Source of the DNA: Pelomyxa schiedti
Taxonomy: Eukaryota > Protista > Evosea
Assembly (NCBI GenBank): GCA_020536535.1
Contig: JAHLWZ010000791.1
Location: 249,017 to 313,016, forward strand
DNA length: 64,000 nucleotides
Direction: 5' to 3'
The position numbers and the translations under genes were made by a program. Under the pieces are notes generated by a model, which made no database searches, was not told the DNA's origin, and worked only from the letters and a program-made list of their open reading frames with translations. Below are positions 47,696-48,367 of this stretch, in pieces (within the stretch, counting starts at the first letter, position 1; each line of letters begins with the position of its first letter).

Positions 47696-47734
47696 TAAAC
47701 TATAAGGGTGGTGGGGAACCAAGGGACTGGAGGG

Positions 47735-47912
47735 AGTGCTTGATGCTAATTACACTACAGCCGGTGCCCGGCAGGACTCGAACCTGCGACCAATTTATCA
47801 GGAGTAGATTGCTCTACCAACTGAGCTACGAGCGAGCTGGGGGGACTTGAACCCCCACCTCGGCGACTTGGTGTCGCCGAACAGTCCAACCAGTCTCCAT
47901 TTTAAGTTTATG
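47735..47912 (-). tRNA. Putative permuted tRNA(CAT), copy 1: 3' half 47835-47912, 5' half 47735-47762, with intron(s); possibly degenerate
   Basis: 3' half: CATA-intron-C-TGGTT...GAGGT GGGGG TTCAAGT CCCCC CAGCT. 5' half lies downstream: GGCTG TA GTGT AATTA GCAT C AAGCA CT. There is a G:G mismatch in the anticodon stem. Confidence 0.5.
47763..47833 (-). tRNA. trnR-CCT: tRNA-Arg(CCT)-like, copy 1 (nested)
   Basis: GCTCG TA GCTC AGTTGGTA GAGC A ATCTA CTCCTGA TAAAT TGGTC GCAGG TTCGAGT CCTGC CGGGC ACC. Good A and B boxes; only 5 acceptor pairs. Confidence 0.75.
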
Positions 47913-48007
47913 AGAGCACCCTGGGCAGCTGACCAACAGTTTGCACCTCTTCTTGTGCCTGCAATCTGTGCCCACCACATACTTGTGGGTTTCTTTTTTT
48001 CAAATAC

Positions 48008-48018
48008 AAAAAGAAAAA
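48008..48018 (-). terminator. Putative Pol III terminator (two T5 runs) of tRNA module 2
   Basis: TTTTTCTTTTT on the minus strand downstream of module 2 and upstream of module 1. Confidence 0.55.
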
Positions 48019-48061
48019 CTTACAAACGACAAGGGTGATGGTGAACAAAGGATGTGAATGG

Positions 48062-48257
48062 AATGCTTGATGCTAATTACACCACAGCCGGTGCGCGGCA
48101 GGACTCGAACCTGCGGCCTTGATTATTAGGAGTAGTCTGCTCTGCCAACTGAGCTACGCGCGTGGCTGGGGGGACTTGAACCCCCACCTCGTCGGCCGAC
48201 GACAAAGAAGCCGTGGGTCGCCGAACACCCCAAGCAGCAAACCATTATTGGTTTATG
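48062..48257 (-). tRNA. Putative permuted tRNA(CAT), copy 2: 3' half 48162-48257, 5' half 48062-48089, with intron(s)
   Basis: Reconstruction: GGCTG TG GTGT AATTA GCAT C AAGCA TT|CATA^C TGCTT [insert] GAGGT GGGGG TTCAAGT CCCCC CAGCC AC. The AAGCA/TGCTT anticodon stem and GGCTG/CAGCC acceptor stem are both perfect. Confidence 0.6.
48090..48161 (-). tRNA. trnR-CCT: tRNA-Arg(CCT)-like, copy 2 (nested)
   Basis: GCGCG TA GCTC AGTTGGCA GAGC A GACTA CTCCTAA TAATC AAGGCC GCAGG TTCGAGT CCTGC CGCGC ACC. It shows compensatory stem changes relative to copy 1. Confidence 0.75.
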
Positions 48258-48367
48258 AGAGCACCCTTCAATAGTTCAACGGAAATCATTTTGTTGTTTG
48301 TGCTTAGAAACCGGGTCCGGCCAGTACTTGTGGGATGGGTTCTGGGTTTTTGTTGGCTGGGGGGCGA

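Follow-up and report, generated by a model that had tools for sequence, protein, structure and literature searches.

Organization of the two units

The DNA analysed here (a stretch of 64 kilobases (kb), referred to as the window throughout the text) is the final 64 kb of contig JAHLWZ010000791.1 of Pelomyxa schiedti (assembly GCA_020536535.1). On its minus strand, two tandem units with a period of 345 base pairs (bp) are flanked by two annotated minus-strand protein genes; in each unit a complete tRNA-Arg(CCU) gene is embedded in an outer element that has itself the shape of a tRNA, with its parts in permuted order. This composite small-RNA gene is real, conserved and unusual, and a tRNA nested inside a permuted tRNA-shaped RNA is a layout that has not been described. 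The literature searched yielded nothing joining permuted tRNAs and Pelomyxa, and the papers that pair "permuted tRNA" with "Amoebozoa" concern, as far as their titles and abstracts tell, organellar 5S rRNA and the transcription of tRNA-Sec.

An earlier note on this DNA had placed both units at these positions of the minus strand, in a genome that it called amoebozoan-like, and the host is indeed an amoebozoan; the blocks that it listed can be read from the sequence. As regards the extent of the units, their location was given correctly, but the conserved units are longer than supposed, spanning positions 48267-48014 (copy A) and 47922-47691 (copy B): they had been ended at AAGCAYT, whereas conservation runs about 30 nucleotides (nt) further, up to a CACCCTT block that pairs with the AGGGTG found at the 5' end.

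The first block of each unit is AGGGTGCTCTCATAAAC. The order on the 5' side of the tRNA-Arg is a long hairpin, a T arm (GGGGG/TTCAAGT/CCCCC) and, directly upstream of the tRNA, the strand CAGCC in copy A or CAGCT in copy B. The tRNA is followed immediately by GGCTG, complementary to the CAGCY strand, and then by T, R, a 4-bp D-like stem with its loop (GTGT/AATTA/GCAT), C and AAGCA. The T arm with its acceptor strand and the downstream arrangement had been pointed out previously, and both are present.

In copy A (here and below, the coordinates of the units refer to the minus strand), the outer 5' piece (48164..48267, 104 nt) carries the AGGGUG strand of the terminal helix (48267-48262), CUCAUAA (48259-48253), AAUGG (48246-48242), GGGGUG (48231-48226), a variable hairpin (48224-48192), the T arm (48185-48169) and the acceptor 3' strand CAGCC (48168-48164). 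The nested tRNA-Arg(CCU) occupies positions 48090..48163, discriminator C included, and the outer 3' piece (48014..48089, 76 nt) is composed of the acceptor 5' strand GGCUG (48089-48085), the D-like hairpin (48082-48070), AAGCA (48068-48064), CACAUCC (48056-48050), CACCCUU (48037-48031) and a T5 terminator (48018-48014).

The outer 5' piece of copy B (47836..47922, 87 nt) contains AGGGUG (47922-47917), CUCAUAA (47914-47908), AAUGG (47901-47897), GGACUG (47887-47882), a variable hairpin (47880-47860) and the T arm (47856-47840); the final U of its acceptor 3' strand, CAGC(U) (47839-47835), doubles as position 1 of the tRNA-Arg(CCU), which lies at 47763..47835. The outer 3' piece (47691..47762, 72 nt) includes GGCUG (47762-47758), the D-like hairpin (47755-47743), AAGCA (47741-47737), CAGUCC (47729-47724), CACCCUU (47710-47704) and the T5 terminator (47695-47691).

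Two occurrences of the outer blocks were counted in the window, against 0.02 expected, and there is no third; no further unit was found in 76 kb of other P. schiedti DNA. A short interspersed nuclear element, or any other dispersed repeat, was rejected on these grounds, no extra copy existing in either the window or the other 76 kb.

Conservation between the two copies

The identity between copy A and copy B changes from block to block: it is 33% in the spacer upstream of the unit, 100% over AGGGTGCTCTCATAAAC, 100% over CGAGGT, the T arm and CAGC, 84% over the tRNA-Arg, 96% over GGCTG...AAGCA, 68% over the trailer, and 88% over the CACCCTT block (eight columns, i.e., one variable base and the invariant CACCCTT). 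From such a patchy identity it follows that the duplication is old. Since the outer blocks (96-100%) exceed the enclosed tRNA-Arg (84%), they are more tightly constrained than the tRNA itself, which argues that the outer RNA has a function of its own.

The outer blocks include invariant stretches of 11 and 19 nt that are largely unpaired in the consensus fold (see below). A protein or another RNA presumably binds the invariant and mostly unpaired CUCUCAUAAAC and GUGUAAUUAGCAUCAAGCA; the invariance of stretches so long is an argument for a partner specific to the outer RNA, and against a disposable cradle.

No relatives were retrieved in two JGI metagenome scans, in an IMG/VR viral scan or among the GTDB genomes. 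A prokaryotic origin was also considered and rejected: across 596 gigabases of bacterial and archaeal genomes a 19-mer matched a single time, outside any tRNA context, which is about the number expected by chance.

Promoter and terminator signals

Inside the 33%-identical spacer, two elements are located at equal offsets in both copies. The distal one is the 10-mer CCCACAAGTA (copy A, 48325..48334; copy B, 47980..47989), lying 67 nt before AGGGTG, and the proximal one is GCACAA (48298..48303 and 47953..47958, respectively), at -36 from the A of AGGGTG. The distal element is DUSE-like: the sequence [A/T]CCCACAA, which begins one base before CCCACAAGTA, i.e., at -68 in both copies, fits seven of the eight positions of the Dictyostelium DUSE, [AT]CCCA[AT]AA, found about 60-63 nt upstream of many Dictyostelium non-coding RNA (ncRNA) genes transcribed by RNA polymerase (Pol) II or Pol III (PMC3188802, PMC7919456).

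As a control, a U2 small nuclear RNA gene was found in one of four additional P. schiedti loci (L003, 13711-13497, minus strand, contig JAHLWZ010000424.1; Rfam score of 140 bits), and it carries the DUSE-like CCCCATAA, which begins 61-62 nt upstream and has its CCCA starting at -61. Thus, a DUSE-type promoter seems to be present in Pelomyxa, and the comparison of the sequences suggests that the ncRNA element of Dictyostelium type may be common to the Archamoebae.

The distance of the distal element would suit a transcription start at AGGGUG or a few nt before it. Neither unit is interrupted, along the RNA strand, by four or more consecutive T, and a T5 run is located 8-12 nt past CACCCTT; the predicted transcripts are 254 nt (copy A, 48267-48014) and 232 nt (copy B, 47922-47691) long.

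A 14-nt match to the promoter-like element of copy A, CCCACAAGTACTGG, occurs at L006:18554-18567 (minus strand), antisense inside an annotated gene. It is accompanied neither by a tRNA-like feature nor by an AGGGTG 67 nt downstream, and it is probably a chance match.

The nested tRNA-Arg(CCU)

The earlier note's claim of a full tRNA with anticodon CCT nested in each unit is borne out by both ARAGORN and Rfam, which call a tRNA-Arg(CCT) at 48163-48090 (43.3 bits) and at 47835-47763 (47.5 bits; gathering score 29). The tRNA-Arg reaches the covariance threshold with canonical D- and T-loop nucleotides, and its A and B boxes, TAGCTCAGTTGG and GGTTCGAGTCC, are present. Its acceptor stem falls short of seven pairs, 1:72 and 2:71 being A.C and C.A in copy A and U.C and C.A in copy B, and the Rfam alignment of copy A bears mismatch marks at both ends. 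The pairs 27:43 and 28:42 differ between the copies by compensatory changes, a C29.A41 mismatch exists in both of them, and at position 37 copy A has A where copy B has G.

Position 1 and the discriminator of the tRNA-Arg lie immediately next to the terminal base pair of the outer helix, with an overlap of 1 nt in copy B. This exact fit allows the two acceptor helices to stack on each other as a rod of 12 bp, whose bubble (2x3 nt, or 1x3 nt in copy B) sits precisely at the RNase P and RNase Z sites.

On the 3' side of the acceptor top, A71-C72-C73 is kept, and position 1 is A or U depending on the copy (48163-48162/48092-48090; 47835-47834/47765-47763). A conserved 3' strand facing a variable position 1 is the pattern of amoebozoan mitochondrial tRNAs with rebuilt 5' ends, although the gene is nuclear in this case; in those mitochondrial tRNAs, the 5' ends are rebuilt by Thg1-like 3'-5' polymerases (PMC5041481, PMC4284800). 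The mismatched acceptor top raises the question of whether a nuclear-encoded tRNA might also be repaired by the amoebozoan 3'-5' polymerases (cf. PMC5041481). Ordinary tRNA genes of P. schiedti were sought for a comparison of acceptor tops, and neither a tRNA gene nor a B box was found in the 76 kb sampled; a B-box match at positions 1068-1078 of the window lies inside a coding open reading frame (ORF) and is not a tRNA.

Fold of the outer RNA

The consensus fold, obtained with RNAalifold on the two units only, is a five-way junction. The two ends of the unit form a rod of three helices, namely AGGGUG/CACCCU, UGG/CCA, and GGACUG/CAGUCC in copy B, corresponding to GGGGUG/CAC-A-UCC in copy A; the third helix includes one G-C to C-G swap between the copies. 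A second pair, in the acceptor stem of the tRNA-Arg, is kept by a two-sided change (G-C to U.G). In copy B the variable hairpin consists of 8 bp capped by a 5-nt loop; its counterpart in copy A has 15 nt more. The whole tRNA-Arg cloverleaf is enclosed by a 5-bp acceptor helix (CAGCY/GGCUG), with the canonical T arm before it and the D-like hairpin after it. In the modelled fold, the branches follow one another as in a class II tRNA whose anticodon side is open and whose acceptor side is closed.

The outer element possesses several tRNA hallmarks (U8, A14, A21, A15/U48, G53-C61 and the T loop UUCAAGU), as well as a D stem composed of G10.U25, U11-A24, G12-C23 and U13.G22. It is off-type in the acceptor stem, which has 5 bp and not 7, in the absence of a discriminator, and in the 5-nt D loop AAUUA, devoid of G18 and G19. 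This closing helix also appears in the minimum-energy folds of the single units, whose z-scores are -2.9 and -1.1.

The tetranucleotide AGCA is present twice within UUAGCAUCAAGCA, at a distance of seven bases from start to start (48064-48075 in copy A, 47737-47748 in copy B). Either of them can pair with the 5' GGUGCU, over 6 or 7 bp, and this may point to an RNA with more than one conformation.

A possible two-piece tRNA mimic

Anatomy, conservation, promoter and terminator signals and cleavage-site fit are all legible in the DNA itself, whereas transcription, cleavage, stability of the two resulting pieces and the existence of a partner are what we infer. The reading tentatively preferred here, more plausible than any of its competitors and yet far from assured, is that the outer element is a tRNA-shaped ncRNA, and not the precursor of a tRNA-Met. 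Each unit would be one small-RNA gene, with an external DUSE-like promoter of amoebozoan type and a T5 end. Pol III would transcribe copy A into about 254 nt and copy B into about 232 nt of RNA, beginning at AGGGUG or immediately upstream of it. The ends of the transcript would pair as the long, interrupted rod of the "anticodon side", followed by the variable hairpin and the T arm; the 5-bp acceptor helix, instead of being open, would be capped by the complete tRNA-Arg(CCU), and the D-like hairpin would come next.

The inner tRNA would then direct RNase P and RNase Z to cut exactly at the last base pair of the outer acceptor helix, and the mismatch bubble at positions 1-2 and 71-73 of the tRNA-Arg might keep the cut sites accessible in the 12-bp stack. 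The cuts would release the tRNA-Arg and leave outer pieces of 104 and 76 nt in copy A, and of 87 and 72 nt in copy B, which may stay paired as a two-piece tRNA mimic, with CUCUCAUAAAC and GUGUAAUUAGCAUCAAGCA presumably engaged by the partner. On the basis of the cofolding energies (-59.0 kcal/mol for copy A and -57.8 kcal/mol for copy B, versus -45.4 and -40.6 kcal/mol for the pieces alone), the outer pieces are predicted to remain together.

Several points weigh against this scheme. The structural support is thin, coming from two sequences only; a crossing 7-bp alternative (GGGUGCU/AGCAYUC) is conserved to the same extent; and, with a D loop lacking both G18 and G19, a tRNA-like elbow is not assured. 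The A and B boxes inside the tRNA-Arg are good ones, and Pol III might start just upstream of the tRNA, skipping the 5' piece. In addition, a canonical-looking CUCAUAA together with an AAUGG able to pair is what an intron-bearing pre-tRNA would show. When transcripts or other copies were looked for via chance ORFs, exact look-ups and a word-indexed search gave blank results, and an exhaustive phmmer search returned noise only. Neither unit contains GNCGAA, i.e., no Ro-binding motif is present. Lastly, the Rfam model of YrlA (RF02553) scores only 28.4 and 26.6 bits on the two units, versus a gathering score of 69, and its alignment spans the outer T arm and the D arm of the tRNA-Arg; as the latter arm is borrowed, the match is not evidence of membership in that family.

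Alternative readings

Among the competing explanations, the one that survives best, doubtful as it is, considers the outer sequences as a cis-acting leader/trailer cradle for the tRNA-Arg(CCU), to be degraded after processing. The structured cradle would provide an external promoter together with an additional B box, and its helix would position or regulate RNase P and RNase Z. The tRNA-Arg is in fact the sole element passing a curated model, leader-trailer pairing is common in pre-tRNAs, and the outer helix exactly abuts the cleavage sites; moreover, the first terminator is located about 75 nt beyond the tRNA-Arg in both copies, so that the 3' block would necessarily be co-transcribed. However, the outer blocks are more conserved than the tRNA that they would serve (96-100% versus 84%), including in the mostly unpaired 11- and 19-nt stretches, whereas a pure scaffold should tolerate compensated changes, as the rod and the variable hairpin do, and full T, variable and D-like arms far exceed the needs of processing.

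The earlier note had proposed that the outer element matures to a tRNA-Met(CAU). In this reading, which we consider unlikely, the outer element is a circularly permuted pre-tRNA-Met(CAU) with a spliced intron, and one precursor gives rise to two decoding tRNAs: the excision of the tRNA-Arg by RNase P and RNase Z would open the acceptor, the leader and the trailer would be removed, and the ends would be ligated, possibly via a circular intermediate. Part of the evidence agrees with it. The permuted order is there, with the T arm and the acceptor 3' strand first, the acceptor 5' strand and the D arm last, and the two strands complementary to each other, but only 5 bp are formed; the position of the intervening sequence is occupied, as had been stated, by a full tRNA, the tRNA-Arg(CCU), in both units. 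The gene order, the external promoter and the T-stretch match those of the permuted tRNA genes of Cyanidioschyzon merolae (PMC3978253). The spacing of the 5' half is canonical (U8, 4-bp D stem, A14, A21, C26, AAGCA, YU), the invariant CUCAUAA is a textbook anticodon loop of tRNA-Met, and AAUGG can pair with UCAU in the manner of an anticodon-intron helix.

The anticodon arm is where the proposal begins to weaken. The loop had been given as YTCATAC, while the sequence reads CTCATAA, and the stem AAGCA/TGCTT holds in copy A but not in copy B, where TGGTT introduces a G.G mismatch (duplex energies of -3.4 and -0.2 kcal/mol, respectively). An in-silico re-permutation, of the kind that had been put forward as a check, was unfavourable, since ARAGORN calls the proposed join, with the intron removed, a tRNA-Met in neither copy. 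Between the proposed junction and the proposed intron, 4-6 nt would be left as an exon. When 4800 in-silico joins of the halves were submitted to ARAGORN, CAT was returned 0 times for copy A and 12 times for copy B, the other calls comprising many other anticodons.

The only construct that works as a tRNA-Met takes the removal of three segments, i.e., 13-15 nt after position 26, the trailer plus the leader, and an intron of 20-21 nt, and leaves exons of 5 and 6 nt. ARAGORN calls it tRNA-Met(CAT) at default settings in copy B and at a lowered threshold (-ps85) in copy A, and its minimum-energy fold is a class II cloverleaf. The fold counts in favour of this reading; a class II body counts against the identity proposed, as none is known for a tRNA-Met.

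Further difficulties concern processing. The known permuted tRNA genes are processed at a defining signal, the bulge-helix-bulge (BHB) motif (PMC3978253). An exhaustive scan of the trailer side versus the leader side revealed no strict 3-4-3 BHB in copy A and at most three in copy B; the one examined has a central helix made entirely of G.U pairs, and none of the copy B matches has a counterpart in copy A. Moreover, the one helix in which both strands changed in a compensatory way, GGACTG/CAGTCC in copy B and GGGGTG/CAC-A-TCC in copy A, connects the "leader side" with the "trailer" and crosses the proposed anticodon stem. The acceptor of 5 bp, without a discriminator and overlapping the tRNA-Arg, and the lack of G18/G19 point in the same direction. 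With a broken stem in copy B, no conserved BHB and a re-joined sequence that ARAGORN does not call a tRNA-Met, the maturation to tRNA-Met(CAU) is not supported, and the claim of a hidden tRNA-Met is weak.

A third possibility, very unlikely in our opinion, is that the RNA stays uncut as a double tRNA-shaped molecule of 230-250 nt, whose inner tRNA-Arg would be a structural module and not a decoding tRNA. The unpaired 1:72 and 2:71 of the tRNA-Arg in both copies, the retained C29.A41 mismatch, the A/G difference between the copies at position 37 (unexpected in a tRNA that reads AGG), and the possibility for the acceptor helices to stack as a 12-bp rod with a small bubble are consistent with it; against it, the anticodon loop CUCCU of the tRNA-Arg is identical in the two copies, the changes in its stem are compensated, and all the canonical D- and T-loop nucleotides recognised by RNase P and RNase Z are present.

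Finally, a decaying class II tRNA gene that received a tRNA-Arg, was duplicated and gene-converted, and retains functionless outer blocks can hardly be credited, even though only two adjacent copies exist and no relatives were found in the metagenome, viral and bacterial/archaeal genome searches, because blocks of 100% identity beside stretches of 33-60%, with upstream elements at fixed offsets, fit selection and not conversion tracts, and because the changes in some helices are compensated.

Comparison with known systems

All 4227 Rfam models were run on the locus with permissive filters, and the whole window was scanned at gathering thresholds; in both cases, the tRNA-Arg was the only element above threshold. 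Several candidates were discarded by hand. The likeness to U6, U6atac and U2 is limited to short motifs (UUAGCAU, GUAGU), the ACAGAGA/AAGGAGA and branch-site boxes being absent or varying between the copies; no conserved motif matching those of SRP, RNase P or MRP RNA is present in the units; and in a tRNA-Sec the use of UCA as anticodon would put C at position 33 and U at position 37.

The permuted tRNA genes known from Cyanidioschyzon merolae, prasinophyte green algae, the Bigelowiella nucleomorph and Thermofilum pendens likewise encode the 3' part before the 5' part on one strand (PMC3978253), and they share with the units an external upstream promoter and a downstream T-stretch (here, the -67/-36 elements and T5). 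Their intervening sequence of 1-74 bp is removed by RNase P and RNase Z (PMC3978253), and the sequence between the acceptor strands of the units fits this range. Unlike in those genes, the intervening sequence is here a complete tRNA and the host is an amoebozoan; no plausible junction carries a BHB, the acceptor is made up of 5 bp, and the halves need two further excisions to give a cloverleaf.

The order of the elements is also that of the YrlA RNAs, bacterial Y RNAs that mimic tRNAs: a stem, a T arm, a closed acceptor, a D arm and a stem, with the ends of the RNA on the anticodon side. In Mycobacterium smegmatis, YrlA is cut by RNase P in the closed acceptor stem, is CCA-tailed in vivo and yields two fragments (PMC4201824), the same fate that might be envisaged for the outer RNA of P. 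schiedti. YrlA is, however, a bacterial RNA bound by Ro60 (Rsr) through the GNCGAA motif (GNCGAAN0-1G; PMC4201824), which both units lack; it retains GG in the D loop and has a small loop at the closed end of the acceptor, whereas the units are devoid of GG and closed by a whole tRNA. No TROVE (Ro60) gene turned up in the DNA examined, no search having been aimed at it.

As for transfer-messenger RNA (tmRNA), ARAGORN found none, and the only Rfam match to it (13.7 bits) covers 17 nt of the T arm. Two-piece tmRNAs are encoded by circularly permuted ssrA genes in alpha-proteobacteria, cyanobacteria and jakobid mitochondria; their permuted precursor loses the segment between the acceptor strands and leaves two paired pieces with a tRNA-like domain, a fate resembling that proposed here. 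The units differ from them in having no tag reading frame and in being a eukaryotic nuclear gene. In MALAT1-mascRNA and in the plant tRNA-small nucleolar RNA dicistrons, RNase P and RNase Z set the ends of a co-transcribed ncRNA by acting on a module that is a tRNA or resembles one. There, the module stands beside the other RNA, whereas here it is nested within the helix of the other RNA, so that a single excision would give rise to one 3' end and one 5' end, still paired with each other.

The DUSE-driven ncRNA genes of the Dictyostelia (PMC3188802, PMC7919456) likewise have a CCCA element about 60-67 nt upstream of the RNA (counted, for the units, from the predicted start) and a T run downstream. 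In contrast to them, the motif is here CCCACAA (7/8), the host is an archamoebid, for which no DUSE has been described, and the RNA is unrelated to the Class I RNAs.

Other features of the window

The gene neighbouring the units encodes Sel1 repeats, and the named paralogues among its best matches are all from P. schiedti. Farther away, at positions 29264-32977 (plus strand), adjacent ORFs code for a SLOG/LOG-like domain, a ribose-5-phosphate isomerase A and an endonuclease/exonuclease/phosphatase domain (Pfam). The region 44000-46500 shows a GC skew of +0.39, coincident with a low-complexity ORF on the minus strand (45295-46473) that is rich in Pro, Thr and Gln and is part of an annotated gene of 641 amino acids without a Pfam domain.

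Biological significance

So far, reports of permuted tRNA-type genes are limited to a few algae, one nucleomorph and a single archaeon, and those of Y-like tRNA mimics of this topology to bacteria and phages; the units described here are conserved, are equipped with promoter elements and belong to an anaerobic amoeba. A bolder version of the model may also be conceived, in which one Pol III precursor yields two acceptor-ended RNAs: the cuts of RNase P and RNase Z at the inner tRNA-Arg(CCU) would at once generate both acceptor ends, 3' and 5', of the outer RNA, the outer class II shape being CCA-tailed and acting either as a nicked, two-piece adaptor or, once re-ligated without a BHB, as a CAU tRNA. 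This outcome is improbable; if it were true, a tRNA gene would be nested in a permuted tRNA gene, in an amoebozoan, and would be matured without the BHB motif.

According to the two-piece mimic favoured above, the tRNA would hold the position of the intervening loop, and ordinary tRNA end-processing would cut the second RNA into two paired pieces. If these pieces accumulate, they would reveal a novel route by which a eukaryote produces a split tRNA-shaped RNA, and they might offer a handle on the role of such mimics.

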